A stretch of 64,000 bases of DNA from Epithemia pelagica (lineage: Eukaryota > Protista > Bacillariophyta): positions 310,001 through 374,000 of the forward strand of contig OX337242.1 in NCBI GenBank assembly GCA_946965045.2. Reading direction: 5' to 3'. The notes under the pieces were generated by a model. That model was not told the origin of the DNA. It worked only from the letters and a program-made list of their open reading frames with translations, and did not search any database. Shown in pieces: positions 43,639 through 63,203 of the stretch (the stretch's first letter is position 1; every line of letters starts with the position of its first letter). A program made the translations under genes and the position numbers.

Positions 43639-45282
43639 ATGGTCCGTCGGGACGACGAAAGTGACCATGCCTTGTATGTAGCACAGTCGTTTCATCATCA
43701 TCATCATCATCGTCATGAGAATGAAACTGTAACAACCCACAGGAGCAGCAGCAACAAGAAAACGACAACAACACGAAAAAAGAAGAAGAAACAGGCTCCC
43801 TCTCCCAAGCAAATGGGAAGCATTGTCATTCTTCGTCAAGGGGAAGCCTTTGAACTCGTCAAAATGTACCCCACCACTCCTCCGACGACCAATTCGAGCG
43901 GTCCAACATCAACAACAAAAACCACCAAAACCACACGACGTCCTTCCAGTCCATCTCCAAGCAATAGGCAAGGTCCACAACGATCATCATCACCAAAGGA
44001 ACAAACTCGTCGTCCCGAAACACCCAAGGATATGCTCGACTTGACGGTGACTCCCACAATGGATACACGTGTCGTTCAAAATACCATTCACCCCAAACAC
44101 GACACTTTACTACCACCATCACCATCCCTGTATGCGGCCAACGAGGCGACTAGTTTTGATACCTTTACGTTGGATGTGGACCACATGGATGAGAATGAGG
44201 ACTGGGACATGTCAACTCCCGAAATGTCGTTGGACCGCACCCGAACACCAGACCAAACCACAAGGTCCCCCACAAGCATGCCCCAAACAACACGTTCACG
44301 ATCTCCTCCATTGCCAAGAGCCGCATCTCCTCCTCCTACAACGACTCCTCGACGAGACACGAATGGAATGGAACCCACCATCCGAATGACTTCTCGATCG
44401 GCCATGCAGAAGGAACGCAACAGTCCCAGTCGAACCAACACTCCTCCTCCTACTTCTTCTTCCAACCCCTGCATCTTGCGACGCGATGCCAGTGCCAATA
44501 GTATTTTGGAAACGGCATCGTCGTCTCGACCCGAAACTCCCGTTGCACGACAACCACCACCACAACCACAACGACCTCCCCCACGGTCTCCGACCCCCTC
44601 CATTGAGTGGAACACCAGCACTGCTACTACTCCGACGACTCGTGCGATGGATCCTCCCGACAGTCGTAGTAGTCCAGAGGACGAGACGGTGGCTCCTCAA
44701 CCATCACTCCTCCTCCCCACCCGACGCATTTTCCACACGGTTCAGGCAACCACCATGCCGCCACAGAGGCAGCAGCACCAGCAGCCACCAACACAACAAC
44801 AACCACAAAAGCAGCAGCAAAAGCAGCAACCACAAAAGGAGCAACAAGAACGCGGCACTGTACCAACCACCACCACTCGTCGAGTTTCGATTCAAGACAT
44901 GGATACCAAAGTAACGCAAATTGCGACGCAGCAACAGAAAGAACACGAACACAACGAGACAGACGATGATGACGACGATGATGATGAGGATGAAAGTGAG
45001 GCCTATGATCACTTTGATCAGGGCACGCTCGGTACGGGACCCTCGGACGACGACGATGGCGATGATTCCCTCATTACCTTTATTCAGCTCGACGAAGACG
45101 AAGATGATTCCTTGGTCCCCACGATTGGTGGAAACGGCGACGACGACAAGACGATTATTCCCATTTTAAAATGTGGAGCAAGTTGTGGTGCCACCTACGA
45201 ACTGATTGGTCTGAATGAAGACACGTACGAACTGTCCTGTGGACGTGGATGGATCAAACGATCTCGAGGATGGGGCACCTAA
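43639..45282 (+). CDS. Cluster family A protein 2 (Pro/Ser/Thr-rich disordered, terminal motifs)
   Basis: 547-aa ORF. N-terminal motif GSIVILRQGEAFELVKM; C-terminal motif IIPILKCGASCGATYELIGLNEDTYELSCGRGW. Confidence 0.85.
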   Translation: MVRRDDESDHALYVAQSFHHHHHHRHENETVTTHRSSSNKKTTTTRKKKKKQAPSPKQMGSIVILRQGEAFELVKMYPTTPPTTNSSGPTSTTKTTKTTRRPSSPSPSNRQGPQRSSSPKEQTRRPETPKDMLDLTVTPTMDTRVVQNTIHPKHDTLLPPSPSLYAANEATSFDTFTLDVDHMDENEDWDMSTPEMSLDRTRTPDQTTRSPTSMPQTTRSRSPPLPRAASPPPTTTPRRDTNGMEPTIRMTSRSAMQKERNSPSRTNTPPPTSSSNPCILRRDASANSILETASSSRPETPVARQPPPQPQRPPPRSPTPSIEWNTSTATTPTTRAMDPPDSRSSPEDETVAPQPSLLLPTRRIFHTVQATTMPPQRQQHQQPPTQQQPQKQQQKQQPQKEQQERGTVPTTTTRRVSIQDMDTKVTQIATQQQKEHEHNETDDDDDDDDEDESEAYDHFDQGTLGTGPSDDDDGDDSLITFIQLDEDEDDSLVPTIGGNGDDDKTIIPILKCGASCGATYELIGLNEDTYELSCGRGWIKRSRGWGT

Positions 45283-45451
45283 GAAAGAATGAATGAATAA
45301 ATGAGGCTACCCGATACCCAAGAACCGACATTCAATGTATATGATGATTCTAAGATAAGCGTTTGAAACAGCAGTGTTCTGTTTGCCCCAACAAGAATGG
45401 ATCCTCGTCGTCCTCTAGGGTCTCTACTCTAGGAGCATAACTGCAAAAGAC

Positions 45452-45649
45452 CCGTTGCTGCGGTTTCTGGGGTTCTGGTCGTCCAGTCGCTTAGCGACTG
45501 AAGCATTGCGTGCTGCGCGTGACGGACAAGTTCCCATAGATTTATGGTGACTTTCGCCGTATCCGTTGGACAGGACGCGATCGCAAAAAGGCAACGTTTC
45601 AACGGATCCATGGCCATAAATATTACTATAGCCGAGGATGTCAACGGAC
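45452..45649. promoter_or_regulatory. Four MSA-like boxes upstream of A3
   Basis: CCGTTG at 45452 and 45563; CAACGG at 45600 and 45642. Confidence 0.6.
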
Positions 45650-45896
45650 CAAAACGTTACAAGTTTCCCCATATAGATGAGGCTGGGAACGTTGGAAGAC
45701 AAAAAGTCTAAGAAAAGGACTGGCAACAAGGACAACCCGGCAGAGGAAGACCACAGAGATCGAGAGGTTCTTTATTCGTGGGCTTGAAGGGAGGAAACGA
45801 GGGGCCAATATAACAGATCAACATTTAAAGAACAGGGACCATCAATCAACACTTTTGAAATACGCAGTTGGATCTCTCTCTCTTTGGCACGAGACA

Positions 45897-47465
45897 ATGA
45901 CGGATGGAACGATTGCAACGTTCACTCCTACTGTATCCAAGCCAACGATGATACGATCCTTTCGCGACGACTCGTCGACGAGTGGATGGAGTTCGTCGGT
46001 CAAGACGGTGGCGTTGAAAAAGACGGAGTCGGGTCGGATTGTCATTTTGAGTCGAGGGGATACCTTTGAGCTGGTCAAACTCATTCCCGATTGGACTGAC
46101 AATGAAGACAATCAATCGGTGGTCAGTCGAGTCCCACAGGCTACCTTTTCCAGTGACAATAGTACCGTTGCGTCCATGATTATGAGTGAATCAATTACCA
46201 GACGAGCAAGGACCAAGCAACCCATTCGGTCCCCTGCCGATGCCAAGGTTGCAAAGCCAACGGTGTCGTTCAAAGATCCTCCCGACACGACATGGCATGT
46301 ACCAGCAACAATACCCGAGATGGAAAGCGTGGATGGCAGTGGATTCATGGAAGATGACATTGTACGAAAACACAGCTTTTCGGATGTGCGACTAAAAGAA
46401 GAAGAGGAGGAGGAAGATGACGACGAGGAGCACATCGACCACATTCACCAGGATGATTGGGATGCCAATGGCAGTGAAGAAGATGATAAGTATACAGTCA
46501 CTGAAGAAGAATCCAACCAGGAGGATGAAAAGAGAGACGACGTTACAAGGACATCGGCCTATGATGACGACAATACCAGAATAACTGCAGATGATGACGA
46601 TGATGATGATATCACAAGATATTCCATTGATGATCAAGTGGGAGGATCCAACACAGCGGTACGGCTCATTGTACGAAAACACAGCTTTTCGGATGTGCGA
46701 CTAGAAGAAGAAGAGGAGGGGGATGACGACGAGGAGCACGTCTACCACATTCACCAGGATGATTGGGATGCCAATGGCAGTGAAGAAGATGATAAGTATA
46801 CAGTCACTGAAGAAGAATCCAACCAGGAGGATGAAAAGAGAGACGACGTTACAAGGACATCGGCCTATGATGACGACAATACCAGAATAACTGCAGATGA
46901 TGACGATGATGATGATATCACAAGATATTCCATTGATGATCAAGTGGGAGGATCCAACACAGCGGTACGGCTCATTGTACGAAAACACAGCTTTTCGGAT
47001 GTGCGACTAGAAGAAGAAGAGGAGGGGGATGACGACGAGGAGCACATCGACCACATTCACCAGGATGATTGGGATGCCAATGGCAGTGAAGAAGATGATA
47101 AGTATACAGTCACTGAAGAAGAATCCAACCAGGAGGATGAAAAGAGAGACGACGTTACAAGGACATCGGCCTATGATGACGACAATACCAGAATAACTGC
47201 AGATGATGACGATGATGATGATATCACAAGATATTCCATTGATGATCAAGTGGGAGGATCCAACACAGCGGTACGGCTCAATCATCATACACGAAAGAAG
47301 GAGCAACAACGACATCAGGATGATGAGACTACAATGAACAGTGCCGTCGTTCCCTTTGTCCATTTTGGATCCGGGTTTGGCACAATGTATGAGCTCGTAC
47401 AGGTAAATGTGGACACACTGGAATTCTTTTGGGGAAGAGGTTGGGTAACGTACGACGCACCATAG
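45897..47465 (+). CDS. Cluster family A protein 3 (highly acidic, with a triplicated 102-aa block)
   Basis: ATG at 45897. N-terminal motif GRIVILSRGDTFELVKL; C-terminal motif VVPFVHFGSGFGTMYELVQVNVDTLEFFWGRGW. Confidence 0.85.
   Translation: MTDGTIATFTPTVSKPTMIRSFRDDSSTSGWSSSVKTVALKKTESGRIVILSRGDTFELVKLIPDWTDNEDNQSVVSRVPQATFSSDNSTVASMIMSESITRRARTKQPIRSPADAKVAKPTVSFKDPPDTTWHVPATIPEMESVDGSGFMEDDIVRKHSFSDVRLKEEEEEEDDDEEHIDHIHQDDWDANGSEEDDKYTVTEEESNQEDEKRDDVTRTSAYDDDNTRITADDDDDDDITRYSIDDQVGGSNTAVRLIVRKHSFSDVRLEEEEEGDDDEEHVYHIHQDDWDANGSEEDDKYTVTEEESNQEDEKRDDVTRTSAYDDDNTRITADDDDDDDITRYSIDDQVGGSNTAVRLIVRKHSFSDVRLEEEEEGDDDEEHIDHIHQDDWDANGSEEDDKYTVTEEESNQEDEKRDDVTRTSAYDDDNTRITADDDDDDDITRYSIDDQVGGSNTAVRLNHHTRKKEQQRHQDDETTMNSAVVPFVHFGSGFGTMYELVQVNVDTLEFFWGRGWVTYDAP
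46359..47279 (+). repeat. Coding tandem repeat, 3 copies (309, 306, 306 bp), near-identical
   Basis: attgtacgaaaacacagc starts at 46359, 46668 and 46974. Confidence 0.97.
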
Positions 47466-47790
47466 TGGCTGCGACAAATCCACCAAAAGGGAAGGGGATG
47501 GGGGTGATCCATCATGTAGCTAGCAAATACTCGCGCTTCAAATTTTGTAAATTTGTTGTACTTGGAATGAAAGGCATTCCATTAGCAGTCATTCTATCTC
47601 TTTAGAGCACCCTTTGCGATCAAATAATGTTCAACTCCCATGGTCTCCGAAGCAACAGAACTACGGATAGCCTTCCAAGTCACACATTTTTCCTGGTCTT
47701 TTTGGCTGCACCTAGTCTAGCATCGGACAGAGAAAAGAGAGGGTAGGTTATAGAACATGACCCATTAGATAACGACTTAGAGAAGGTATC

Positions 47791-48024
47791 CATCCGTTGA
47801 GCACGTCCGGAGGGTTTTGTTACCTACCCCCAAGCAGGGGTGAGTCCAGTCCCGCGTGTCTGAAAGCACGACATGTGAGTAAGAGAATGTACCTTTAGGT
47901 ACGACTTATGTGCGACCTGGACTCACCCCTGCTTGGGGGTATTTTGTTACCGCAATCGCGCACATCCTGGACCATGTCCAAACATGCGGCAACAAATGGA
48001 CTTAACAACAATCAGTCCGTTGGA
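47791..48024. promoter_or_regulatory. Two MSA-like boxes upstream of A4, flanking the MITE
   Basis: catccgttga at 47791 and gtccgttgga at 48015. Confidence 0.55.
47825..47941. mobile_element. 117-bp MITE with perfect 25-bp TIRs and a 10-bp target-site duplication
   Basis: TIR tacccccaagcaggggtgagtccag (47825-47849) and its exact reverse complement (47917-47941). ttttgttacc is duplicated at 47815-47824 and 47942-47951. Confidence 0.92.
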
Positions 48025-48163
48025 TGCAAGTGTTGTTGTTATAGCACGAAGGAATAATCGGCTGTCTTTTGCAAGTCATGGAAGGTTCTGTTGAACAAAG
48101 AAACGTCTTGTCAGTTTGCTCCTCCAAGGTCTTGTTGGACCATTGCTGGAAACCATCCGCACC

Positions 48164-49342
48164 ATGGTAGTTCCAAGTCACTCGTCGTTTCGCGCCTCAT
48201 CCTCTCGGCAATCGTCGTCGTCTTGGATGACGGGTCGTCGAGAATGGCATCCTTCGACCGATTGGTATCCCACCCGCACTAGTGACCCGAGTTTGGTCGA
48301 ACAAGATGCCATTGCGGTCGGTTTGCTTCGTCACACGGCAGAGGAGGACGAAGCCGATTGGTATCCCATCGCCAATTCGTCACCCGAAGAACGATATCGT
48401 TCCACGACCATCCTCCAAGAAGAAGAAGAAGAGGAGGCGGATCATCAAAACTGGTCCTCGACCTCCTCCGCCAACGCAAGTCATTCCGGAACGAATGCTG
48501 TCAGCAAGCATCGTCGACACAAACCGCAACCAACGAACAATGACACTAACCAAGATGAGGATGAAGACCGAAATGTCCCGGACGAAACAGAACGCGACAC
48601 TCGTACACCAGACAAGACAACGCAAGACACGAGAACCACCACGAGGAATCATCCGACGAAATCAAGGGACACAGACAGAGACCGTGTCCTGAAAGAAGAA
48701 GAACAAGACGAGCAACAAGAAGAAGAACAGGATATGCGAGAGGACGATGATCAATCGCTCCATTTACGATCGGTAGCACTCGTGGCGCCAGATTCCGAGA
48801 CGTATGCGCTCATTCGAGTCAATACCAGCACGAAAGAAAAGGTTCAAAAGTGGAAGCGACGGCAACAAGAAAGGGGTTCGTTCATGTCCGGTAGTAGTAA
48901 TAGCAGCACGGTCGAAGAAAACGACTCTGGGGACCAGCCGCCGCAGCCGTACATGCAGGACAGTGCATCGCATTCCTCGTCCAAATGCGGGGTGACCACC
49001 AGGAAGAGTCGAGACGACTACTCGTGCAGTCACTACACGGACGCAGGAACCTGCAGTTCCCAATCCTGGACCAATCTCCAGCGCATGCAACGGTCCAGTT
49101 CGCTCCCTCTGTTCCGGTCGGTCCCACAACCCCAAAGCGGCAGCAGCAACAGCAACAAGAGTCACCCAAATCCTTTCGGTGGTTCGTCCATGACGAGGAG
49201 AACGTCTTCAAACCAAAGTGCCCCCTCCCGCAGTCGTACCGGAAAGAGCCTCGGCGGTCCAGCAAAATCCAAAGATCGCACTCTACCACTACGCAAGGGA
49301 AGAAGTCTGGGTGACTTCCTTTCGAAAAAGACTCTTCGGTGA
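48164..49342 (+). CDS. Cluster family A protein 4 (disordered, one degenerate motif)
   Basis: Open frame from ATG 48164. RSVALVAPDSETYALIRVNTST resembles the family-A C-terminal motif. Confidence 0.75.
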   Translation: MVVPSHSSFRASSSRQSSSSWMTGRREWHPSTDWYPTRTSDPSLVEQDAIAVGLLRHTAEEDEADWYPIANSSPEERYRSTTILQEEEEEEADHQNWSSTSSANASHSGTNAVSKHRRHKPQPTNNDTNQDEDEDRNVPDETERDTRTPDKTTQDTRTTTRNHPTKSRDTDRDRVLKEEEQDEQQEEEQDMREDDDQSLHLRSVALVAPDSETYALIRVNTSTKEKVQKWKRRQQERGSFMSGSSNSSTVEENDSGDQPPQPYMQDSASHSSSKCGVTTRKSRDDYSCSHYTDAGTCSSQSWTNLQRMQRSSSLPLFRSVPQPQSGSSNSNKSHPNPFGGSSMTRRTSSNQSAPSRSRTGKSLGGPAKSKDRTLPLRKGRSLGDFLSKKTLR

Positions 49343-49345
49343 TTG

Positions 49346-49869
49346 GTCCGTTGATTCATTGTGCTTCTTGATGCTATATGGTATTTATATTAGTAGGAGT
49401 ATATCGTTGATTGGGTTATAGGAGTAGTTTTGCGCAAGCATTGTCTTTATTAGAGAGCGACTACGGAAAGGGATCGTTTTCTTTTGTGTCCGTCGAATAG
49501 GTAGCATACCTAGAGTTTCTAGCACTCCGTCTGTAGGATGTCGAAAATTCGCAGCGAACTGACTGTCTGCGACTGACTGACTGTTGTGGGTGTCTATGCG
49601 AGCTCGCCGCGCACCCACAACGCATCCAACCGCCAATGGCGCACAGTTCGTCTAACTGAGCCTCTATGTAGGCAAACGTTTGGAAGATGGGGACAATACG
49701 CAAACGTACCATGGACTTAGCAGGACGATGGCGCACTGATAAGAAAGAGGGAGGAATCGGTGGTGTGGAAAAGAGAGTAGTTGTTGGATGGCCACTCTCG
49801 GTATCGTCGTTCAACCTCCGGAAACGATTGCCGGATTGTAATATTGCTTGGCGCTTGGCATCCGTTGGA
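49346..49869. promoter_or_regulatory. MSA-like boxes upstream of B1
   Basis: gtccgttga at 49346 and catccgttgga at 49859. Confidence 0.55.
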
Positions 49870-49960
49870 TTATTTTTACCATCTTCACCTCCCACCGCAA
49901 CGACCAGAATAACAACTTCTACCGTGCCATTCTCTTGTTGTAAAATTTGGAGGTTGGACC

Positions 49961-52253
49961 ATGCCCGGTCGATCAAGTGGGAAAACCTCCAAGGGGAGTG
50001 GACGCTTCTCCATTGGTGGAAGACGGAATAGGAACAAAAATAAGAAGGAACGCAATGAAGCCGTCATTATGATCGATGGCGGTGCCTATCGCAAGCCACC
50101 ACCACCACCACCACTACGAACCCCCACCACCACCTACAGTGATGTCGACGAATCTTCCTTTGTCCTAATGGAAGATCAAGAGTATCTAAGAGACGAAACG
50201 ACAACTCCGTTTGAGCAAGAACATGAAGAAGAAGAAGAAGAAGAAGAATGGACCGCCGCAACACCGTTTGTCATGGACCGATTACCCTCCACCAAACCAG
50301 CAACCATGGGTGGCAAACGGTACCACCACCACCCAGCCGAGGTACCACCACAACGCCAGGCTCTGGACCCGTACGACGAAGAAGAAGAAGACGAAGAGGA
50401 TGTCACGTATGCACTCGAAGAAGAGGTGCTAACCCAACTCTTGGAGGAAACAGTCCTGACCGAACCACCACCCTCAATACTGCCGGAAGAAGAAGAAGAA
50501 GAACTAGACGAAGAAGAGATGGAGGAGCTGGTGAAACACACGCACGACGCCGATTCGGCCATTTTTTCCAATACCTTATCCAAACTCACGGACGATGCTC
50601 AGTCTGCGGCACCCTCAGTCGATACGACTGTATTTTCTCAAACAATTTGGCAGTTTGAGTTCGTCCGAATTCATAGCCAAGGATGCTCTCAAGGATTTTT
50701 TGTTGGTGGGAGCAGGATCCAAGCGCAGTCGTCGATCGGCCTCTCCTGTAAACCGACCAGCTTCACCACACAAACAACCACCGCAGTCCAACTATCCGCC
50801 TGCTACTACTTCACATGAACGAGACGACCTGGAGACAGTCGAAGGTAGGATGGAGCCGTCCAGACGAGCATTTCCACCCAGCCAGGAACCCCCACTTCAA
50901 CAAGAGGAGAATGATGAGGAACAAACCAATCTTTCCATGGATGAATATTCCAACTCTCTCGTGGAAAAGAAGAGGAAGCGGATGACTTCACGGAACGACC
51001 CGAGGCCACGATCGTTACTTCGGTGGTCGAATCCTATGCACCACCCCCACGACCCTCCACGCAACAACAAGCACCACAGTGGAATCGCAAGACCACCAAG
51101 AAACTACCCAAAAAGGGCAAACTCGGCAAGGGCCGATCGTCCATGGGAGGTCGTCGGCCCATACCGGCCGCTCTTCCTGCGATTCGAGAAGACGATGCCA
51201 TTTCCGAAGGGGCAGAATCTTACTCGCAAGCGTCTTCGGGCACCTCGTCTCAGTCCAAGGGAGCCATTTTATATGCTGTCAGTGTCCCACAACGAAAAAA
51301 GAAGCCGAGCTTTCTCGGTCGAGCCTTTCGTCGGAACTGACCAGCGTCCCTGGATGAAGAGGACGACTATTACAATGACGATGAAACACGCGACTATTCT
51401 GTGGAGGACCAAGAAACGCGCCTGTCTTCCGTGGTGCCAACATCCAAACCAGTGCGAGGCCACCCACCCACCATGGCGCATCGTAGAGAAAAGCCGCAGC
51501 AACCGATGCAACGTGGTTACAACAACGAGAATAATAAGACTCCTGGAGCCAGGCTATCATCATCGGCGGTGGGGAAATCACCACGTCGGTACGATGATCC
51601 CAGCTTTTTGGATGTAGAGGATGAGATTGCGACACTGGATAGTGGTGCCCTGGAAGAAACATCCGTGACCGAACTACTATCCAAGATTGACGCAGATTTG
51701 AACTCACTTTCTCTCTTGACGTCGTCTCATCATCTAAAGGGTGACGATGAGTACTCCGAGTCTTTGAAATCGTCTCAGTTGGATTATGATGATGAAGATG
51801 ACGACGATGATGATTCTCGAAAACCCATGAAGGTTCCTTCGTTTGTGCATCCGACCGATATAGAGTCGGCATTGGGAGACATATCCCTTAGTGCATCGCG
51901 ATCCAGTGTCTCGCAAGAATCCGAAACCACAAGAGAAACAGGTGTCAGCGATAAAGATTCCATGACCACCTTTTCCAAAGTTTGCCGATGGCGCCTCCAT
52001 GGGCACCACCACGTTGGCAGGTGACGACGATGATTCGAGTGGCGACAACAATATCAAAATGATGCAAGATACCTTCTTTGATACGGCTGTATTTTTTGGT
52101 TTGAAAAAAGAAAAACCAACACCCGAAGACGATGACTTTAGTCAAATAACACCCGTCAACTTTGGCTATTTCGGAAGCGCCTTGAAAGATTCTGCACTCT
52201 CAGTATTTGCTCCATCGGCGAAGAAGAAAAAGAGCCAAGGCCATGCAAACTAG
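49961..52253 (+). pseudogene. Cluster family B member 1, interrupted by three 1-bp frameshifts and one in-frame TGA
   Basis: Coding-like sequence runs through ORFs 49961, 50595, 51023, 51401 and 51999. Shifts occur at homopolymers near 50635, 50967 and 51978, with a TGA at 51338-51340. It ends in the family-B motif QDTFFDTAVFFG...DDFSQITPVNFGYFGSALKDSA. Confidence 0.75.
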
Positions 52254-52493
52254 TGTTTAATCGAATATAATTTATGTTAACTGTGTATATATGCATCCAT
52301 TTCTCTTAAGCGTCACATTGTGTCGAAAAACATCCTGAAAGAACGACTGGGTGTGGTTAAGGACAATAGGATCCTCTAGCCTATTGAAATACATAGCATA
52401 GGTAGTCTTTGATGAAATAATAGGTGTACTCCTAGGAGTAGTTAGATAGAATAGAGGAAGGTAGCAAAAGATACCCTCTGAAGTACGAAGATG

Positions 52494-52565
52494 CATCCGT
52501 TGAGCATGGGATGTCACCGATATCAACTTTGGGCAACACTTTTGCATCGAGCATCCCAATAACGG
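52494..52565. promoter_or_regulatory. MSA-like boxes upstream of B2
   Basis: catccgttga at 52494 and taacgg at 52560. Confidence 0.5.
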
Positions 52566-52951
52566 TAGAATGGCAGTTGAATGGATTGATGCCACATAGA
52601 ACCAAAAACCAGACATCCCCCAACGTACGAGGGATATTAGACCATAGCGGTCCGTTTATTTCTTTGCCGTACACAGCGCACCCAATTCTGACACTCGTGA
52701 GAGTATGGCTTCTATCTATGATGCTATCTACGAATGTCTTGTGCGGCTCTTGCAGAAATGTCGATGAGTGACAGCCAAGCCGTTCCGGGATGCACCGAAT
52801 TTAAGAATTGCCATGAAAGAGTTGTGACGGTTGAGCTGCGTCAAGGAATTTTTCATTCACCCAAACGCTTTTGCACCACAAAGAATAGACCCATTTGTCG
52901 TGTCGTCTCATTCCTGAAAGCATATTCACAGTCACCAAGGGCAACATTTCC

Positions 52952-54409
52952 ATGAGGGTTGAGCGACGAAACCAGAAGGCATCCGACGATGCGACCATGA
53001 TTGTGGACCCCACTGCGTCCTTGAGCTTTTCGGGAGCTGCTCCGGCTACAATGAAGCGTTCGAGCTTGTCAAGGAAGCGGCAACAAGTTCCACTTCGTCG
53101 ACTGGACACGAGAAGAGGTCCCTCTGCCATGGCAGGATCAGCGAGGACTGCACAGCAGCCAACAAGAAGAAAGGCAGGCAAGGGTCGCTGGAGACGAAAT
53201 GTTGTCAAGAATGTATCACAACGACACATTCCAAGTCTTCCTGTGGTTCATGAAGAGGAGAGTATGCCCGAGCTGCCGATTGAAACAACACCGGAACTGC
53301 CTAGAGCGACTCTTGCTGTTATAAAAGCCGCTCCATGGAGTGAAACTTCCTCCTCCTCCAAGTCGTTTGTCGAAAATACAATCGAAGGTGTCATGAAAGA
53401 AACGAACAATGCCATCACGTATATCAATACCGATGCCCAAAAGGATCTTTCTTCGAATTTCAATGCGGTGAGTGCCTCACTCTCGGATTCCTTTGGATAC
53501 ATTGAGAGTTATGTGATGAAGCCTCCCTCTCTCCGATCTACCGCCGGGGAAAAGTCCAACCAACAAGGTTCGTTTGACGTCATTGCCCGTCTACGAGAGG
53601 AGTCCAGGCTCGAAGATGAAGCCATGATGAAAACACAACGAGAATCAAGAGATGAGAACAGGGACTCGTCGGATGATATTATCGCCCCAATCACTTTTGC
53701 ATCGGATGCGCAAGATTATTTCCCGGAAGAAACAGAGGAAGAGACAGAAACCCATGACCACAACCAGGAACGAGACGCTGCTCCAGATCTTGAAGAGTCC
53801 GTTGATGACGAAAGGAATGAGGAATCTACAGAAAACGAGGCAACCGATATAATTCCTGTCGGTGAGATGCTCCGTATCCATGACTCTAGTTCGGATGTGG
53901 AGATTATTGCGAGTTTTATCAATGCCCAAGTCTCTCAGTCCCATGTGGAAGTTGTCATGAACTGGACCCATTCTGGACTTGAATCAGTTTCAAGTGCTTT
54001 GAGCAGCTTTGGCAAGTCCCAACTCGACTCATCCTCTCATGACATGGCAGAAGACTCAGACGATGAGGATTCGGTGGCATCGGAGGAACCCATTGTTGTC
54101 ATTCCGACCGACACTACAGAAACCGAGTTGGTGCTCAACAAGAGTTCGGAGGAACCCATTGTTGTCATTCCAACCGGCACTACACAAACCGAGTTGGTGC
54201 TCAACAAGAGTTTGTCCAACGACGAACAAAGTTCCACATCTCAAGACAGAATGGACTTTTCTTTTCAAGACACGTGGACGAAGACTGCCGAGATTATGGG
54301 CTTGAGTTCTCCACATGACACGAGCTCGGATCTCAACCATGCCGCCTTGATGAATCCACTTGCTCTTATAAGGCAAGCCAGGACTGAAGAAGATTCCCAA
54401 GGACAATAG
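52952..54409 (+). CDS. Cluster family B member 2 (basic N-terminus, acidic disordered body)
   Basis: Open frame from ATG 52952. KAGKGR...IPSLPVVHEEE resembles B1 KLGKGR...IPAALPAIREDD. C-terminal QDTWTKTAEIMGL. Confidence 0.8.
   Translation: MRVERRNQKASDDATMIVDPTASLSFSGAAPATMKRSSLSRKRQQVPLRRLDTRRGPSAMAGSARTAQQPTRRKAGKGRWRRNVVKNVSQRHIPSLPVVHEEESMPELPIETTPELPRATLAVIKAAPWSETSSSSKSFVENTIEGVMKETNNAITYINTDAQKDLSSNFNAVSASLSDSFGYIESYVMKPPSLRSTAGEKSNQQGSFDVIARLREESRLEDEAMMKTQRESRDENRDSSDDIIAPITFASDAQDYFPEETEEETETHDHNQERDAAPDLEESVDDERNEESTENEATDIIPVGEMLRIHDSSSDVEIIASFINAQVSQSHVEVVMNWTHSGLESVSSALSSFGKSQLDSSSHDMAEDSDDEDSVASEEPIVVIPTDTTETELVLNKSSEEPIVVIPTGTTQTELVLNKSLSNDEQSSTSQDRMDFSFQDTWTKTAEIMGLSSPHDTSSDLNHAALMNPLALIRQARTEEDSQGQ
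54080..54211 (+). repeat. Coding tandem repeat, 2 x 66 bp (SEEPIVVIPTxTTxTELVLNKS)
   Basis: Units start at 54080 and 54146. Confidence 0.93.
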
Positions 54410-54841
54410 TCCAAAGTCATTCAATGCTCTTAATGAGTGACAAAGTTCCCACGTCAAAGGTAACCTTCGTGTCCATCCTCGGCACAATTCGTATATGTCC
54501 TATCTTTGGATCTACTTGTGTTTTGTTCATAATATGATAAATTCCTCTCATTTTGCCCATTCTATTCCATAGAGACTCCATGATAACTCTACCCGTCTGA
54601 TTATTTCATTCGCACAAGCGACCACCAGAACGGAACCAAATCTCAAAGCAGTCGCACTGTCTGTCACAGAGATCTATGCCCTTCTCGTTAGCGATTGCAC
54701 AATTCCTTATGCCCCATGGCAGACGCATGTCAAAAATGGCCCGGATAAGTGAATGGGCTTCCGTCTGAAATACGTTGACTCCCTACCAATCTTTGTTGTT
54801 ACTTATGAAGTTAAATGTGTTCATTGTCTAACTCTTCTTTG

Positions 54842-54927
54842 TCAACGGACAACATTGTCGTATGTCCACGTCTCAGACGACAACATTCATAAGTAAATCC
54901 GACCGTTGACCGAGAGGAGCCAACGGA
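54842..54927. promoter_or_regulatory. Three MSA-like boxes upstream of B3
   Basis: CAACGG at 54843, CCGTTG at 54903, CAACGG at 54921. Confidence 0.55.
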
Positions 54928-54954
54928 AAAGGACATCCGGCCAGCAGGCCTATT

Positions 54955-57900
54955 ATGACCATGCTCATTATTTCATTTTTGTTGAGCATCCATCACGTGT
55001 CCGCCTTCTTCTTTTATGCACATGATTCATTCTGCAATCTTGTAGTGTCAAACTCAGAAACGCATTCACATTGGAGGCCACAAAGAAGCTTTGGAGAAAA
55101 AATGGAGCGCTCTCGTTCGAGAGAAAATGATGATGGTATGGAGTCCAGTGCAGAAGAAGTCGTAAGCACTCATTCCATGAAAGGATTCTTCCTCGATTAT
55201 CATGCAAGATCGGCTGAGGAAAACCACTCCCCAGAAGAAGACAGGTTTGTGGAGCATTCAAAGGAGAGGGAAAGTTCTGATGAACGAGATGAGCCACTTG
55301 TGGAAGATCAACAAGACTCTAGTTTGGCCGAGAATTTGGAGCTGAACCAGTCAAGGGGTAGCGAGCAGCAAGACTGCGAGGTACAACACAACGATGACCT
55401 CTCATCGCAGTCGCAAGATTCTCCTTTTACAAATGAAGAGCAAGGAGACACAACCGAAACGGGGGACCAAGACATCCAAGAGGACAACGATGGACAAATC
55501 ACTAGTACGCCGAGCAAAGCAGGCAACGACGAATCCAAGACACAGGAATTGGTACAAGTCGACTCTTTGAACACTACATCTAGCTCTACATCTATTCGAC
55601 GTGTTGTGGGTTTGACTGGTCGAATCCGAAGTTTCTTGAAGGGAGGAAAGCATGAAAAGCTAGATTCCAAGGTATCGACTACAGCAACCCGACAAGATTC
55701 GAACCCAATGGACAAAACGGTTGCACGCACAGACATGCTAGACGTTCCGGTACAAGAGAGCAGCGTCCCATCCAACGAACTGGAAAAAGTTGCAACAGAA
55801 GAGGATCTCACAAAGTTGATTGAGCAAATCAAAGGGTTTATCGATTCAATCGGTATTTTCATGAAAACCCGTCTTTCTCAAGAAGTGACGGCGATGATGC
55901 ATCAGTCAGAAATTCAAGGGCCTTCGACATCGGATGTAACTTCGGTGGCCAATGATGTTGCGGGTTGGATGAAGGACAACATCCAGCGCTCATCCATTCA
56001 GGCATCTTGGTGTCAAGGGGACAATATCAAATCCATGACACAAGGCTTTGGTTGTGGTTCAAACGACAGTGAGAAGGACTCCATGGCTCATGGTTTAGTT
56101 TGTGGCCCAAATTACAACGCAAATGAGTTACACAAATCTCCTGATTTGGATCTACTACTCAATCGATTCTACGACGCAGTTGGTGTTATGGAAGCATCCG
56201 TGGATGTCATTGTTAAAATGCCGGGGAGGGTCACGAATGATATCCAGAAAACATGGAACGAATGGAGTGCCCAGCTTTCGTGGATCCGAACCGAGGCGGA
56301 AACGAAACAATGGGCAGCAATTGAAGGCGGTCAGGATTTTACAGAGGAGCTGTTGAAGCATCCTCTTCCAGTCCTCCATGTGGATCAAGCTGTGGAAGGC
56401 GAACCAAAGGATGCAACCGATGGTGTCCAGAAGACAGATGTTTCGCCTAGAGGAAAAGATTCTTCATGTTCCTCATTGGCAAGCAATGCATGCTCAACAA
56501 AAGCTTCTTCTTCTGTGAAACGGGCACCACCGAAGAAGAACAAGCCACACAAAAGCAAGGAAGAACAGCCACGTAGTCGTTCTTCTGGGTCTTCGAAACG
56601 CCTTTTCCGTTTCAGTTTTGCGAAGAGCAAGCGAAAGACACAAGACCCCTCGTCGGTATCGGGCAGTACGAAGGATCAGAAACAAGAGGACGAGGCAGGC
56701 TTACCAGTGGACAACAGTAACAACACTGTCGCTAAGGCGTCCAAGCCCGTAGAGAGCGCGTCTGGGGAGAGAACTATCCAAGAAGAGGACCTTGAGAAGC
56801 GGTCTCACATTGATTCACATGTCAAATCGACTCCAAAGCACCAAGCAGATCAAGAAGACGACACGGTCACAGATGGAAAACTCAATAAGACATGCTTGAA
56901 TACTTGCATGCCGGACGAACAAGAACCTTTGTGCTGTGCTCCTTTTGCTTGTGGTAACAATGCCGAGCTGGAAACTACGGACCAAGACGATATCTCAATC
57001 ACTTTCACCACGGGGGATGTGGCAACTGAGGCCCCCTCCTTGGCGGATGCCAAACCCACCAACATCACTGAGAACCCACAAGTCGAAAGCACCGTACAAG
57101 ACAACGAAGAATCAATGGAGGATCGCGTGGAAAGTGGTTCCACAAAAGCTAAATCTGTCAGTGCCGTAAGGTCATTTTTCTCGTTTTGGAGTGTAGCCGA
57201 GCCAGAAAAGAATCATGATAAAGAGATTCCAGAGTCTCAGGAAGAGGCTTCTCTCCAAGCGGATCTTGTCAAAGAACCAAATGTCACCACTACCACAACG
57301 GATCAGGTGGAGAATTCATCGACGCAAGAGCAGGCAGAAACTTCATCTAACGACGGAGTCCATGATATCAAAGAAAATGGAAGTCAAGACAAGAATGTAA
57401 GCGATGTAGACCAACAGGACGACATGTTGTGTGCACCATTCGTATGTTGTAATACCGAGCCTGAACCCGTTGACGAGGAAGACAACATTGTGAGTCCCAG
57501 TACTCCAACGTCCCAGCTAGAATTTGAAGAAACAACTACTGTGACCGAGCCTTCTAAAGTCAGCAACATTCCGACAGAGAAAGAATCGATCAAGGACCAC
57601 CTAGAAGATACGAATGGAAACCCTCCATTAGAAAAGACAAAACGCAGCAAGGGCGGGAAACGCGGAAAAAGCTTCTCCAAGGGAATGCACTCTATATTTT
57701 CTCGGTCTCATAGATCAGGCAAAGTCCGGAAAACCAAGAAAGCTATTCCAGTTGAGAATCTAGATGACCGAGGAAATCCCAGCGCAATTGAAAAGGAGGG
57801 CGCAGACTCCAAATCAGCTAGCACAACAACCGCTGCCAATGCTTTGGTTGATCCATCTAATGTGAAGAAGTCGTCTGACAACCGTAGTTGGGGTAAGCCA

Positions 57901-59298
57901 TCCCAAGGGACAACGAACACTTCGAATGAGAAAGGTACAACTGTGGATGCTGTCGAGCAAAGTGCGGAGAAAGCCACAAAAGATATGGAAGTGGAACATT
58001 CCAATGCAGTGACCATGTCGGAAATCAACAGCCTATCCATTGAGGAACACCCAGCCGATGAAACAACAGAAAATGCCAAAGCTGTGCTTCTCAGGAATGA
58101 CCTTTCTCCTGACACGGAAGAAGGAAACAAAAGTGAGGCAATGAATCAGCAGACGATTATCCCGCCAACATTCCAAGGCGAACCACAGCCATCCGAAAAC
58201 AATACAACAAAAATGGCGGAAGACACGGCGGATTCCTCCAGTAAACGAAGCTCTTCCAAGTCGAAAAAGAGAGGCTTCCAATTCCGAGTGAAAAAGTCTT
58301 TAGTGGAACCTGTTGTTATGGGCACGGAAGAAATTGAAACAAAACGTGGCGTAGCAAAGTTCGCAGGTTCTCTCAAGGCCAAGACCATGAATTCAATCTC
58401 AAGCAAGAACTTTGGTCCATTATCTAGAAAGAAGAAACATGAACAGAAAGAGAAATCGGACGATACCGTCACGACAACCCAAAATACAGCCGTCACCGAG
58501 AAGGATGCTCTACAAGTCATTGTACCAAGTGGGCGTTCGACCATGGGTCAGGGTTCCAAGGTTGAAACTGAGAAGACCAGCCGACTCGGGGCTTTGGCTC
58601 AAGGAACGGAGCGTTCAGTCCAAGGAATGGTTGACAAAGACGAAAAGGTCACGACGGATTCTCAAACTTCACACATGGCTCCACCTGAAACAGTGAGAAG
58701 TACCTCGAGAGGATCCGACTCCCGTGGCGAGAAGAAAAGAATCCAGTTTGTAGATCAACTAGAGGAATTCGACGATCAGGGGATCGAAAGGGTTCTCTCG
58801 TCTACCGTTGATACATTAAGGTATGAATCGAAGGAAGGAAAAGACAAGCAATCCGTTACACCATCGACAACAAAGAACAATGAGCGATCCGAAAAACTAG
58901 ATGAAACCAAACAGGAAATGACCGAAGATGACAAAGGAATTGAGCTGACAGTTAGCAAGAGCGCGTGGGATGGACCGTCGTTTGTCCCACTCAACCAGGC
59001 ATCAATGGAATCGGAAGGTTCAGACGGAGGTGATGACGATCCATTGTTGCCGAGACCCGAGTCGTATGACACGGGAGATTCCCGATCGCAGCATACCAAT
59101 ATTCTCACTGATACCTGGCAAACAGCGACCGAGTTGATGTGCTCACGACAAGGCGAAGCGGACGTGGACGACTCGAGTGAAGTCACTCCGGTGGATGCCG
59201 CATTCTTTGACAAGGCACTGGCGGCTACCACAAAATCGTGGATGCCCTGGGGCAAAAAGAAAGTCCCCAAGAAACTAACATTTGTCGGATTGCCCTAA
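54955..59298 (+). CDS. Cluster family B member 3, ~1400-aa acidic disordered protein
   Basis: Uninterrupted 4.3-kb ORF with uncertain start (ATG 54955 or 55102, or a small upstream exon 54862-54892). C-terminal DTWQTATELMC...DDSSEVTPVDAAFFDKAL. Confidence 0.85.
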   Translation: MTMLIISFLLSIHHVSAFFFYAHDSFCNLVVSNSETHSHWRPQRSFGEKMERSRSRENDDGMESSAEEVVSTHSMKGFFLDYHARSAEENHSPEEDRFVEHSKERESSDERDEPLVEDQQDSSLAENLELNQSRGSEQQDCEVQHNDDLSSQSQDSPFTNEEQGDTTETGDQDIQEDNDGQITSTPSKAGNDESKTQELVQVDSLNTTSSSTSIRRVVGLTGRIRSFLKGGKHEKLDSKVSTTATRQDSNPMDKTVARTDMLDVPVQESSVPSNELEKVATEEDLTKLIEQIKGFIDSIGIFMKTRLSQEVTAMMHQSEIQGPSTSDVTSVANDVAGWMKDNIQRSSIQASWCQGDNIKSMTQGFGCGSNDSEKDSMAHGLVCGPNYNANELHKSPDLDLLLNRFYDAVGVMEASVDVIVKMPGRVTNDIQKTWNEWSAQLSWIRTEAETKQWAAIEGGQDFTEELLKHPLPVLHVDQAVEGEPKDATDGVQKTDVSPRGKDSSCSSLASNACSTKASSSVKRAPPKKNKPHKSKEEQPRSRSSGSSKRLFRFSFAKSKRKTQDPSSVSGSTKDQKQEDEAGLPVDNSNNTVAKASKPVESASGERTIQEEDLEKRSHIDSHVKSTPKHQADQEDDTVTDGKLNKTCLNTCMPDEQEPLCCAPFACGNNAELETTDQDDISITFTTGDVATEAPSLADAKPTNITENPQVESTVQDNEESMEDRVESGSTKAKSVSAVRSFFSFWSVAEPEKNHDKEIPESQEEASLQADLVKEPNVTTTTTDQVENSSTQEQAETSSNDGVHDIKENGSQDKNVSDVDQQDDMLCAPFVCCNTEPEPVDEEDNIVSPSTPTSQLEFEETTTVTEPSKVSNIPTEKESIKDHLEDTNGNPPLEKTKRSKGGKRGKSFSKGMHSIFSRSHRSGKVRKTKKAIPVENLDDRGNPSAIEKEGADSKSASTTTAANALVDPSNVKKSSDNRSWGKPSQGTTNTSNEKGTTVDAVEQSAEKATKDMEVEHSNAVTMSEINSLSIEEHPADETTENAKAVLLRNDLSPDTEEGNKSEAMNQQTIIPPTFQGEPQPSENNTTKMAEDTADSSSKRSSSKSKKRGFQFRVKKSLVEPVVMGTEEIETKRGVAKFAGSLKAKTMNSISSKNFGPLSRKKKHEQKEKSDDTVTTTQNTAVTEKDALQVIVPSGRSTMGQGSKVETEKTSRLGALAQGTERSVQGMVDKDEKVTTDSQTSHMAPPETVRSTSRGSDSRGEKKRIQFVDQLEEFDDQGIERVLSSTVDTLRYESKEGKDKQSVTPSTTKNNERSEKLDETKQEMTEDDKGIELTVSKSAWDGPSFVPLNQASMESEGSDGGDDDPLLPRPESYDTGDSRSQHTNILTDTWQTATELMCSRQGEADVDDSSEVTPVDAAFFDKALAATTKSWMPWGKKKVPKKLTFVGLP

Positions 59299-59978
59299 GT
59301 ACGTGTGTGATTGGTCCTGTCCCTGTGACTGTGTGTGGAAGAGAAAGTCACTTTTGGATGATGACGCCATTGTCATCTTTGATCTCTAGATCGCTCTTGG
59401 TTCGTTGTGTGACTCCCTACCTTAAGCTTTCTTCTGTGAGGGTAGCCATGCGCTCGATAGACTCTCATGAGCGTCAGTCGCTCATAGATCTCGAATGTAA
59501 TATTGTACTGTTGTTAAGAGAAATGCCCAATAGTAGTATATAAAGATGGGTAATATTGTAACGTTCCTAACCGTAGATTCAGATGATTCCCTGCTAAGTA
59601 CGACGTTTTGCCCCTAAGTAACAGATAGTGCCCTTCGAAATCCACGTGACGTATCCTACATTAGAATAGAGACTTTGTGTACATTAGAAAGACCAATTTG
59701 GTCTTGATCGTGTATAACATTTTATCAAAAACAAAAATTTGGCGAGGAAAATTGTAAGCTCACCTAAGTACTGGCGGGCTGCGAGCGGAACGAAAGGATC
59801 GATCCACCCTATTTGTTTTTCTCAGTTTCTCGCAAAAACAACTTTCATCCTCCATGGACCCCTTCCTTGATCCAACGAAACCAACATCAACAAAAAAACT
59901 ACACAGTTCTCGTCCTCCGCATCGAAAAAGCAAGTCAGTCAAACCGGAGAGAGAGAGAGGACGACGCAACGAGTTGCC

Positions 59979-62900
59979 ATGATGCGACGACGTTGGTTCG
60001 TAAAGAATCGACAGGCGGTCAAGGAGGAGAAGAAAGTGGAAACATCCATTAACCCAGCCGCCTCCTTTGAGTTGGTCAATAAATCAAACCGACGTAAGGA
60101 CAAGAAAAACAAATCATCCACAGCTCGTGCGGTGGAGGCACCATCGAAAGAGCAACCACAGTCTCAGGAACAGCGAGATGAAATCAGTGGTAGTGCCGAC
60201 CGAGAACCAAGCAAAGTACCTGAGCGAGACAAAGCTCCCTTGAAAACGCATGCAGATTTTTTTCTTCACTCCATGTCCCTCGAAGAAGAGGAACTGGCCA
60301 AGACTCTCGGAAACAAGAACACAGTGAATGTATCCAGAGCCTCCTCCTCCAACAGATGTGCTTCACCGGAACCAACCACCACGTCTCATGCGGACTTTAT
60401 CCTTTCGACGCTCTCGCAAGAACAGGAACAACAAGCTCTTGTTGCCGTACTATCGGCCGTGGAAGCACTCAAAGCCAAGTCCCAAGATGCAGTGTCCAAT
60501 TTGGCACAAATTGTATCTGCCATTGACAGCATTGAAGAGTCACCCGACTCCTCCGATGGACGAGCCATGGTCTCTGTGCTCCCCAAGTCGGATGCTCCCT
60601 CCATTCCCAACTATGTGGAGGCAGACGAAGACGGGGATGACGATATTGTCTCCAACGAGAACAACACTCTTACTTATCAATCCATGACTGCGGGAGAGCG
60701 CCTGACACGATTCGCAGGATGCATGGTTCCCATGGCCTTAGTCGGTGGGTGTGCTGGAGATGAATTGAAGACCACCGAGTCGGTCGATGCCGAAATTGCC
60801 GCGGCAACAAAGGCACAGAAAAAGACCAAGGACAAAAAGAAGGTACATGGAAAAGCAAAACGTGAAGACAAATCAGAACCACCCAAAGCGCCTCTGGACA
60901 AGTTGGTGGATACTATGGAAGATCAAATCAAGGGTGTGTTTGGAGAATCGGGGGAACTCGGGAACCGACCAAGACATGCCAAGAGTAGTGCTGTACAAGG
61001 CTCTCCGTCCGGCAGCACTGCTCCAGAAAGCGACGTGGAAGAGGAAGCGGCGCCTTCTGTTCCTGCACAAGAAGAAGAACAGGGCATGTCGGATGACTCG
61101 GTCACTGAGCTTGAAACGCCAGCAGCTCCGGTGGCCATATCGACCACTGAAGCCAAAGCCATGGAGGATATGATTCGAGCCCAGCGGGAAATGGGTCTAG
61201 GTTCTAGAATGCGCCTGGAAGTAGTCAAAGAGGAGGAAGAAAAACAGCTGCTCGAAATGAAGACGACATCCAAGTCGGAAGATATGACGGTATCGTTTGA
61301 TTCGTTGTCGAAATCGAATTCTCGGACCGTTGTCAGGTCCATGACCAAAGACTCCTTGAACGCTATTGACGAACATGCCGAGCAGGAGGATGATCAGGCA
61401 AAGGAGCAGAAATTAGAGACTGTCGACGAACTTGTATCACAGACCGGAAAGAAAAACAAGAAGGCCGCTGACTCATCCAAGAAAAGTAAGAGAGGCAACC
61501 GGTTGTTTAAAGGAGGAGGAAAACCGTGGAAGACTAAAATGCAATTCTCGTCCAAAGCCAAAAATATGGACGCCGCTGTGGACACTGAATCAGATGCTGA
61601 AGTCAACCAACCAAAGCCTGAAGAAAAGACACCGGAACCATCCGTGCAAGAACAAATGTTGCCTCCCCATCCTCCTCAAGCCAAGAAAAACATACTGGAC
61701 GAGAAGAAATCACAGATTGAAACTGATCATTCGCTGGAAGAATTGCCAACTACGGAGAGTACCGTTTCTGTTGAATCAATCGTTGAGAAACTCAAGCTAT
61801 ACAATGAAGCTAATCGATCCGGCTCATTGGACGAAACGGATGGCTTCTTGAAAAAATTGGAATCGGACAAGGCGACTTCCCGAAAGGAGGCAAGCCCGAA
61901 CACGCGAGGTCACGAAGAAGGCCGTCTGGCGGAGACCCAATCGGGATCCACCGACTCTTATGATATGAATCCTATCCCAAAAGACACCCCAACGTCTCAG
62001 CCCTCACCCGTCGAAAACAAGGAGGTTATTGGCGGAGTAGTCGATGAGTCGGGTACCGCGGAAAAAGCAAGAAAAGAAGGCAGAGGAAGGAAAAAGAAAA
62101 GTCGTACCGCAGTCGATGGTAAACCTCCGAGACCTGCGCGACGGGCCACCGGAGAGAAGAATCTCAATCCCGTTATCGTGTCCAGCACTTCCAGAGATTC
62201 CGATAGTGCATTCTCCAACAAATCCGCGAGGTCGAAAAATTCGGATGCAGGTTCGAAAACCAAAAAGAAGACTCGACGAAACAACTCAATGGACACAGCG
62301 TCTTCGAAATCGTCTCAGAGCTCGTCCGATTCAATCGCTAAACATCAGGACAAGCAACAAGAAGAACCTCCTCTATCTGTCGGCGCAGACTCACCAGCAA
62401 CGGTAGAACCGTCGGACCGAAAGACGAAGCGCCGGTTTGCTGGTGGAAAACGTTCCGAACAAACTCAAGAGAAAGGAGGCCGTCGTCGATTGAAAGGCTT
62501 TCTACGATCCGCCGTGGGACAAAAGTCGAACAATAACAATACTCAAACCATTGACAATGCCTCGGGACCCGCCAACCACAGCAACGAAATGAACCTGGAT
62601 GACAAAACTGGTTCCAAGGCTGCAGAGAACACCCGCAGTGCTTCTCCGGTCGAAGATGTCCCTCAAAAGACCTCATCAGCTGCGAATGACAGTGAAAGTG
62701 ACTGTTTTAGTGGTGTCGTCTCATCTGAAGAAGATGATAAAGACATTGTCCCAGACGCCGATACGAATCAACTAGTGTTATCAGTAAAACAAGTGAGATC
62801 GTCAGCGATTGAAATCACCACTGCCGATTCGATGGACTCAGAGCTAGCGTCAGCGTTGCTGGAACAATCATCGTCCCGACTGACGGAAGTATCTTCCATG

Positions 62901-63203
62901 GGAGCTGACTCCATGATGGACGAGGAAGTTGATGCGTCCTCCTGGAAAGTCAGCGTTCTAGACGGAGATACTTGGAACGCTGCAATCGACTTGTTGGGAA
63001 TATCCAGGGTGATGGGATGCGAGTGTCAAGATGACACGAGTCAAACAACCCCCGTAAATGCACAATTCTTTGACAATGCCATGACGGATTCGGCCCGTCA
63101 TGTCATGTCGCCCTGGTGGAATGATGAACGTCGATCCCGCCGAAAACCGTCCTCACGCAAGAGCCGTTCCAGACATTCCTATTCCGCATATGACCGAAAC
63201 TAA
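59979..63203 (+). CDS. Cluster family B member 4, 1074-aa disordered protein
   Basis: Uninterrupted ORF. Internal repeat (T/S)HADFxLxxxSxExE and a short coiled-coil-like segment. C-terminal DTWNAAIDLLG...DDTSQTTPVNAQFFDNAMTDSA. Confidence 0.85.
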   Translation: MMRRRWFVKNRQAVKEEKKVETSINPAASFELVNKSNRRKDKKNKSSTARAVEAPSKEQPQSQEQRDEISGSADREPSKVPERDKAPLKTHADFFLHSMSLEEEELAKTLGNKNTVNVSRASSSNRCASPEPTTTSHADFILSTLSQEQEQQALVAVLSAVEALKAKSQDAVSNLAQIVSAIDSIEESPDSSDGRAMVSVLPKSDAPSIPNYVEADEDGDDDIVSNENNTLTYQSMTAGERLTRFAGCMVPMALVGGCAGDELKTTESVDAEIAAATKAQKKTKDKKKVHGKAKREDKSEPPKAPLDKLVDTMEDQIKGVFGESGELGNRPRHAKSSAVQGSPSGSTAPESDVEEEAAPSVPAQEEEQGMSDDSVTELETPAAPVAISTTEAKAMEDMIRAQREMGLGSRMRLEVVKEEEEKQLLEMKTTSKSEDMTVSFDSLSKSNSRTVVRSMTKDSLNAIDEHAEQEDDQAKEQKLETVDELVSQTGKKNKKAADSSKKSKRGNRLFKGGGKPWKTKMQFSSKAKNMDAAVDTESDAEVNQPKPEEKTPEPSVQEQMLPPHPPQAKKNILDEKKSQIETDHSLEELPTTESTVSVESIVEKLKLYNEANRSGSLDETDGFLKKLESDKATSRKEASPNTRGHEEGRLAETQSGSTDSYDMNPIPKDTPTSQPSPVENKEVIGGVVDESGTAEKARKEGRGRKKKSRTAVDGKPPRPARRATGEKNLNPVIVSSTSRDSDSAFSNKSARSKNSDAGSKTKKKTRRNNSMDTASSKSSQSSSDSIAKHQDKQQEEPPLSVGADSPATVEPSDRKTKRRFAGGKRSEQTQEKGGRRRLKGFLRSAVGQKSNNNNTQTIDNASGPANHSNEMNLDDKTGSKAAENTRSASPVEDVPQKTSSAANDSESDCFSGVVSSEEDDKDIVPDADTNQLVLSVKQVRSSAIEITTADSMDSELASALLEQSSSRLTEVSSMGADSMMDEEVDASSWKVSVLDGDTWNAAIDLLGISRVMGCECQDDTSQTTPVNAQFFDNAMTDSARHVMSPWWNDERRSRRKPSSRKSRSRHSYSAYDRN

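Follow-up and report, generated by a model that had tools for sequence, protein, structure and literature searches.

A genus-restricted tandem gene family of Epithemia pelagica with a short conserved module of two predicted helices on otherwise unalignable proteins

Four adjacent genes of the diatom Epithemia pelagica seem to have nothing in common except a few dozen codons close to their 3' ends. What sort of element is kept in this way while the rest of each protein diverges, and what might it do? The genes, here called B1 to B4, lie in a stretch of 64,000 nucleotides (the window), which corresponds to positions 310001-374000 of contig 18 (OX337242.1; assembly GCA_946965045.2, 60.5 Mb in 23 contigs). 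A first-pass annotation, made from the letters of the window alone, proposed that they form a family, family B, united by a C-terminal tail, and that the tail serves for docking or targeting on scaffolds that evolve rapidly, possibly under cell-cycle kinase control. We find that the family is real and that the first-pass annotation understated it. The tail is the sole element common to all members and the sole one under visible purifying selection. Positions given without a contig are those of the window.

A six-frame regular-expression scan of the 64 kb for the first half of the signature, D-T-[WF]-x2-[TA]-x2-h-h-[GC] (h, hydrophobic), returned exactly four matches, at 52068, 54269, 59110 and 62967. 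These are the four places originally reported, and all are on the plus strand, 47-79 codons ahead of a stop. Three of the four matches also have the second half, T-P-V-[ND]-x2-[FY]-F, further downstream (52149, 59185 and 63048); that of B2 is degenerate, as had been noticed, and lacks the FFD core. Comparison with shuffled controls had been set beforehand as the test that could refute the family, and the tails did far better than the controls. When each of ten tails was scored with a profile built from the remaining nine, the scores ranged from 16.5 to 67.5 bits, while the best of 1000 shuffles per tail gave 6.7-14.4 bits and none of the 1000 reached the real score. One 57-residue tail, searched against all six frames of the whole genome, matched family tails only, and a word-based search with the tail region of B4 found only itself. 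The bodies of the proteins were rightly called unalignable, since BLASTP between them gave nothing significant outside the tails. A further motif said to be shared by B1 and B2, K-x-G-K-G-R ... I-P-x-L-P-x3-E-[DE]-[DE], is present in both genes; it is too short to rate and is not significant alone by BLAST. The description of four adjacent large proteins fails for B1, in which the tail occupies a 95-codon frame, out of frame with the upstream open reading frames (ORFs).

Iterated profile searches of the genome identified 13 family loci instead of four (Table 1), 12 of which are assigned to contig 18, where they fall into two arrays. In most members the tail ends 33-79 residues ahead of the stop. 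Judged by ORF, however, it is internal in two members, with 214 residues following it at contig 18, 184.7 kb, and 337 at contig 1, 6.95 Mb, so that "C-terminal" describes its usual position. The arrays also contain damaged copies. A partial remnant, M-S-Q-A-T-P-V-N, lies at ~298.9 kb, and a frameshift interrupts helix 2 of the copy at 205.7 kb (contig 18, 205671-205805, minus strand), where T-P-P-D-P-E-F-F runs into a stop before the helix resumes in another frame. In a second assembly, an insertion of 1.9 kb between B5 and B6 (equivalent to ~381.88 kb of contig 18) encodes one more member, of 400 amino acids (aa), whose tail is intact. The absence of this gene from the genome studied here shows that the array is polymorphic for presence and absence. 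The tandem family evolves by birth and death.

The wider profile search suggested by the first-pass annotation was run against 1.84 billion protein representatives. It gave 14 matches at E<=0.001, all from E. pelagica or Epithemia clementina (NCBI GCA_051400955.1); those from E. pelagica stem from two ENA assemblies and include the other allele of B2. E. clementina has at least seven loci in two tandem arrays on contig JBGMNV010000204.1, where the tail-bearing genes are ACA910_008788, 008789, 008791, 008792, 008808 and 008809 plus a gene of 859 aa, and near-identical second copies of two members are found on other contigs. In one E. clementina gene, of 569/716 aa, helix 1 is in frame and helix 2 lies just downstream in another frame, in both duplicated copies alike; the offset reflects either a frameshift that both copies have in common or a short intron missing from the annotation. 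Pfam-A holds no family that matches seven ORF products (E<=1) or 16 isolated tails (E<=10). The FFD box of Lsm14/Scd6, which was a lead because of the residues F-F-D, was rejected when no Pfam FFD/TFG box matched the isolated tails even at E<=10. A profile search of the PDB returned chance-level matches only, a feature search of the ESM Atlas gave no usable match, and two scans of JGI metagenome contigs yielded pattern matches with no relative confirmed. The best PDB match to helix 2 was T-P-I-N-x-x-F-x-D-x-A-L-A in the N-terminal cap helix of Internalin A (PDB 1o6s and others). Its E value of 0.12 is at the level of chance, the cap belongs to a bacterial leucine-rich repeat protein in an unrelated context, and the match is no evidence of homology. 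The family is undescribed, restricted to the genus, and outside every curated family.

The conserved module is about 55 residues long and consists of two parts, whose consensus shows more clearly in the loci beyond the four of the window. The first, helix 1, has the consensus [RN]-D-x-W-L-[ST]-x-A-E-[LM]-[LM]-G-[FY]-[ST]-K-[YF]-V. It is joined by an acidic linker, which varies from 8 to ~50 residues, to the second, S-[QE]-x-T-P-[VI]-[DN]-A-x-F-F-D-x-A-[LM]-x-[DE]-S-A, in which helix 2 begins at A-x-F-F-D. When B4 is compared with its E. clementina orthologue, only two regions align: the tail, with 43% identity over 86 aa, and a twin N-terminal motif, [ST]-H-x-[DE]-F-F-L. The two copies of this motif stand 46 codons apart in B4 and are the sole conserved island besides the tail. 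It might be argued that the tails are similar only because the tandem duplications are recent or gene conversion has acted, or because the 3' ends hold an element of DNA or RNA, with no function at the protein level; the members are, after all, tandem paralogues, and several copies are decaying. This explanation is already contradicted, and we give it practically no weight. Nucleotide identity among 55 tail pairs averages only 44% (range 29-59%), and 53% of the identical residues are encoded by different codons, which argues that the tail is conserved as protein and led us to reject gene conversion or a DNA-level element. Moreover, the bodies have diverged beyond alignment and the tails have not, and a second species has retained the module.

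Structure prediction, also suggested at the outset, was carried out with AlphaFold2 on the tail of B6, using alignments of 10 and 16 rows. Helices were predicted at residues 7-19 and 40-55 with a predicted local distance difference test score (pLDDT) of 82-86. The linker was of low confidence, the overall pLDDT was 72, and the predicted template modelling score (pTM) was 0.27-0.29. On these models the two helices are credible and their packing is not. The bodies contain 17-18% D+E, 10-15% K+R, ~20% S+T and ~20% hydrophobic residues; the proteins are long, acidic, rich in Ser, Thr and Lys, and largely disordered. No member has a transmembrane-grade segment, and none has a signal peptide, with B3 a doubtful exception (see below). 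In many members no other 19-mer of the entire protein is as hydrophobic as helix 1. An amphipathic membrane helix was considered and rejected: the hydrophobic moment exceeded 95% of a helix's own shuffles in only one of nine helices, and this lack of significant amphipathicity speaks against a helix lying on a membrane surface. A further possibility is that the module mediates self-association: helical hairpins would come together as four-helix bundles and so link the disordered, highly charged scaffolds to one another in an assembly or condensate. Compatible with such a unit are the two short helices and their hydrophobic core motif (W, L-L, F-F, A-L), the flexible linker, the bodies as long polyampholytes, and the many co-located paralogues that bear the same module. 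We nevertheless consider it unlikely, given that there is no coiled-coil heptad pattern and that the pTM of the monomer model is low.

Sequences upstream of the tail were searched for RVxF motifs, with the consensus [KRL][KRSTAMVHNQ][VI]{FIMYDP}[FW] or a stricter form that allows only V. In the 200 residues that precede the tail, 5 of 15 members have the strict form, where 0.45 would be expected; none of 2000 shuffles reached this count. The carriers are B3, B5, B6 and two E. clementina members; the motif lies 33-124 residues ahead of helix 1, flanked by basic residues on its N-terminal side and acidic ones on its C-terminal side, and its spacing is almost the same in B6 (-66) and in the 641-aa protein of E. 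clementina (-67). Within 134 kb read in all six frames, an RVxF motif followed by an acidic run is found three times in ORFs of 150 codons or more, each time in a family member. The strict motif is missing upstream of the tail in 10 of the 15 members, B1, B2 and B4 among them. These patterns make a PP1-recruiting subfamily plausible, as judged from sequence. A further proposal is that the tail and the upstream RVxF together make up an extended PP1-binding region and that the whole family consists of PP1 regulatory subunits. Some known PP1 regulators supplement the RVxF contact with a C-terminal helix, and Phactr and PPP1R15 are interactors with additional C-terminal contacts. The enrichment and flanks of the motif, and its spacing kept between species, would suit this proposal, and the carriers resemble RVxF-type PP1-interacting proteins in being disordered and in having a flanked RVxF that precedes a short helical element close to the C-terminal end. 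It is improbable all the same, because two thirds of the family have no RVxF, the distance between motif and tail varies from 33 to 124 residues, and no Pfam match or other similarity links the proteins to any curated PP1 regulator family.

The best available reading, to which we assign slightly better than even chances, is that the tail is a docking module that folds upon binding and is carried by fast-evolving disordered scaffolds. The two short helices would fold on contact and engage one common partner or site. The module would thereby tether the variable scaffolds, whose other functions would reside in short linear motifs such as the PP1-type RVxF with its acidic flank (about a third of members) or T-H-A-D-F-F-L in B4. 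The original proposal agrees with the data in so far as it speaks of docking or targeting and of scaffolds that evolve rapidly: paralogues share only the tail, it is kept across species while the body is unalignable, its conservation is at the protein level, and two helices are predicted. The docking we infer, and likewise the partner and any link to PP1. Several points weigh against this reading. Docking, partner, localisation and binding are all putative; the packing of the helices is not confidently predicted, at a pTM of 0.29; and only B3 of the four window genes carries an RVxF motif. Helix 2 has been lost in B2, in B5 and in the 1782-aa protein of E. clementina, and B1 and the copy at 205.7 kb are frameshifted, which implies either that the module is dispensable at some loci or that those loci are dying. 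Evidence for expression comes from a public run (X4) whose library type is not on record. Its contigs span 49760-52218, 52947-54562 and from 54924 onward, corresponding to B1, B2 and the start of B3, and drop to zero in three spacers. Such a drop is the pattern of an RNA library, and we take it to suggest that B1 to B3 are expressed.

No residue of the module is better conserved than the threonine of the T-P pair, and T-P is found in 17 of 19 tails; two E. clementina members have T-A, with the threonine kept and the proline changed to alanine, and B2 has N-P. The pair is therefore a minimal proline-directed [ST]-P site, as the first-pass annotation had pointed out. The full CDK consensus, [ST]-P-x-[KR], is found in none of the tails, the residue at +3 being D, N or G and never K or R. 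The idea that T-P is a proline-directed (CDK/MAPK) phospho-switch, and that this switch is the main cause of the conservation of the motif, could also draw on a Myb/MSA-like box, YCAACGGAY, which is enriched in the spacers of the cluster. The window has 13 copies where 3.2 would be expected (none of 100 shuffles reached 13), and 12 of the 13 lie at 43-55 kb (43064-54850). Copies at 49346 and 49860 are upstream of B1, one at 52495 is upstream of B2 and one at 54842 is upstream of B3; no exact box precedes B4. Cell-cycle transcription of the cluster is thus possible. As the main cause of the conservation, a phospho-switch is very unlikely in spite of the conserved threonine and proline; phosphorylation of the threonine may still occur. 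Besides the +3 residues and the two T-A members, conservation spans some 50 positions, far more than a kinase site would account for. The models also place T-P-V-D as the four residues directly ahead of predicted helix 2. At the start of a helix, threonine is expected as a cap and proline in the first turn, so both residues would be favoured there for structural reasons. Control by a cell-cycle kinase, as first proposed, is unsupported.

Epithemia diatoms harbour a nitrogen-fixing endosymbiont, the diazoplast, which raises the question of whether family B has a role there. Six host proteins are enriched with isolated diazoplasts of E. clementina, and three of the six (Ec_g12982, Ec_g13000 and the identical pair Ec_g24166/03819) belong to orthogroup OG0000250, which is shared only with E. 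pelagica and has no domains; Frail et al. 2025 also describe a short three-gene duplication (PMC12377750). It is possible, though doubtful, that family B is OG0000250 and that the module is an address for the diazoplast or its surrounding membrane. Family B is likewise confined to Epithemia, free of known domains and large, with 13 loci in E. pelagica and, in E. clementina, at least seven on one contig plus the second copies elsewhere. The E. clementina arrays lie 16-20 genes apart, and ACA910_008791 and 008809 are separated by exactly 18 genes, as are Ec_g12982 and Ec_g13000. Part of the E. clementina array is duplicated on another contig at ~99% identity, which recalls the published three-gene duplication. 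The identification is nonetheless circumstantial, Ec_g numbers and ACA910 tags having been compared by gene spacing only, and it stays a lead because the duplicated pair that we compared differs by one residue where the published pair is identical. Restriction to the lineage says little by itself, since 1,109 families are common to both Epithemia species and found in no other diatom. There is also no signal peptide or transmembrane segment that would carry the proteins over a membrane, the helices are not significantly amphipathic, and the module is internal in two members.

A comparison by description, not by sequence, can be made with the uTP, the C-terminal UCYN-A transit peptide of Braarudosphaera bigelowii (PMC12176269), in the related UCYN-A system. 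Both organisms are algae with a Crocosphaera-related nitrogen-fixing endosymbiont, and in both, many host proteins that are otherwise unrelated carry conserved motifs at their C-terminal ends; by analogy, the tail may be a signal of this kind. The uTP, however, is an extension on ordinary enzymes, with hundreds of carriers that are shown to be enriched in the organelle (PMC12176269), whereas family B comprises orphan disordered carriers, about a dozen per genome, with the module sometimes internal. Nor does the module look like an added extension: its carriers have no orthologues outside Epithemia, and orthologues within the genus carry the module too. The authors of the diazoplast study found no terminal extension in their enriched candidates and report no shared terminal signal (PMC12377750). 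A tail present in every member could have been overlooked for that very reason. Should family B be OG0000250 and co-purify with the diazoplast, which we rate as distinctly the less probable outcome, the tail might be the first host-encoded address or anchor that can be recognised for the endosymbiont of Epithemia, a counterpart, though early and non-canonical, of the uTP of the UCYN-A nitroplast.

Table 1. Coordinates of family B loci and of features within them (window positions unless a contig is named)
Feature	Location	Strand	Remarks
B1 locus	49961..52250	+	Reading frame broken in this assembly (three-frame reading)
B1 ORF pieces	49961-50818, ~50945-51340, 51344-52024; tail frame 51966-52250	+	
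B1 motif K-x-G-K-G-R ... I-P-x-x-L-P ... E-D-D	51119..51196	+	Common to B2
B1 tail module	52038..52220	+	Helix 1, linker, T-P-V-N, helix 2; leave-one-out 40.0 bits vs 14.4 for best shuffle
B2 gene	52952..54409	+	485 aa from first ATG; acidic, Ser/Thr-rich
B2 motif K-x-G-K-G-R ... I-P-S-L-P ... E-E-E	53171..53260	+	
B2 tail module	54239..54391	+	Helix 1 intact (34 bits with helix-1 profile); helix 2 degenerate (only 8.8 bits with helix-2 profile), ~7 residues including F-F-D gone
B3 gene	54955..59298	+	1447-aa ORF; N-terminal 20 residues hydrophobic
B3 RVxF-type motif K-R-I-Q-F	58735..58749	+	Followed by acidic stretch; 124 residues ahead of helix 1
B3 tail module	59080..59250	+	Leave-one-out 44.8 bits
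B4 gene	59979..63203	+	1074 aa; E. clementina orthologue ACA910_008792 / 002281
B4 twin N-terminal motif [ST]-H-A-D-F-[FI]-L	60246-60266 and 60384-60404	+	Twice in E. clementina orthologue too
B4 tail module	62937..63125	+	48.4 bits; downstream P-W-W-N and basic run kept in orthologue
Eight loci	Contig 18, 302-395 kb	+	B1-B4, B5, B6, one at 302 kb, divergent one at 395.2 kb
B5	Contig 18, 381.4 kb	+	Just past window end; helix 2 lost
B6	Contig 18, 383.4 kb	+	Just past window end
Three loci	Contig 18, 184.7, 194.9 and 205.7 kb	-	
One locus	Contig 1, 6.95 Mb		
One weak further match	Contig 8		
E. clementina first array	JBGMNV010000204.1		859-aa gene, 569-aa gene, ACA910_008789 (641 aa), 008791 (1782 aa, tail degenerate), 008792 (1428 aa, B4 orthologue)
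E. clementina second array	JBGMNV010000204.1, ~300 kb further		008808 (567 aa), 008809 (742 aa)

Among the individual genes of the window, B1 is the most disrupted. In the window allele its coding frame shifts three times, and there is a stop near 51341. A spliced gene was considered and rejected: no contig of other public runs from the same organism contains a splice joint, and alleles in those contigs differ by +14 at 50628, +1 at 50966 and -1 at 51977, indels that would join the frames. The changes of frame are accordingly allelic frameshifts and not introns. In the second assembly one long frame runs over these sites, but it meets a premature stop shortly before the tail, and a further stop and a frameshift occur in the N-terminal part. 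Both alleles of B1 look disabled, each differently.

B3 is the only member with a hydrophobic N-terminus: its ORF begins with a 20-residue hydrophobic segment (54955-55020), which ends in V-S-A with Phe next and resembles the cleavage context of diatom signal peptides. The positional counterpart in E. clementina has no hydrophobic start, and the next Met of B3 is 49 codons downstream; the hydrophobic start may be a spurious 5' extension. Compared with the window, all four public runs, that of the likely source sample among them, have GCC inserted in frame after 54983.

Epithemia, with a permanent nitrogen-fixing endosymbiont for which almost no host genetic integration has been found so far, is the principal system with which the nitroplast is compared. 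A tandemly expanding family that is confined to this genus and has a single selected module offers a handle on host-side proteins born within the lineage. If the family does prove to be the diazoplast-enriched orthogroup, its tail can be tested as a signal for targeting or anchoring. Otherwise, family B is still a clean case of a new family built from a mini-domain and short motifs on disordered scaffolds, part of which, to judge by its RVxF motifs, probably recruits PP1.

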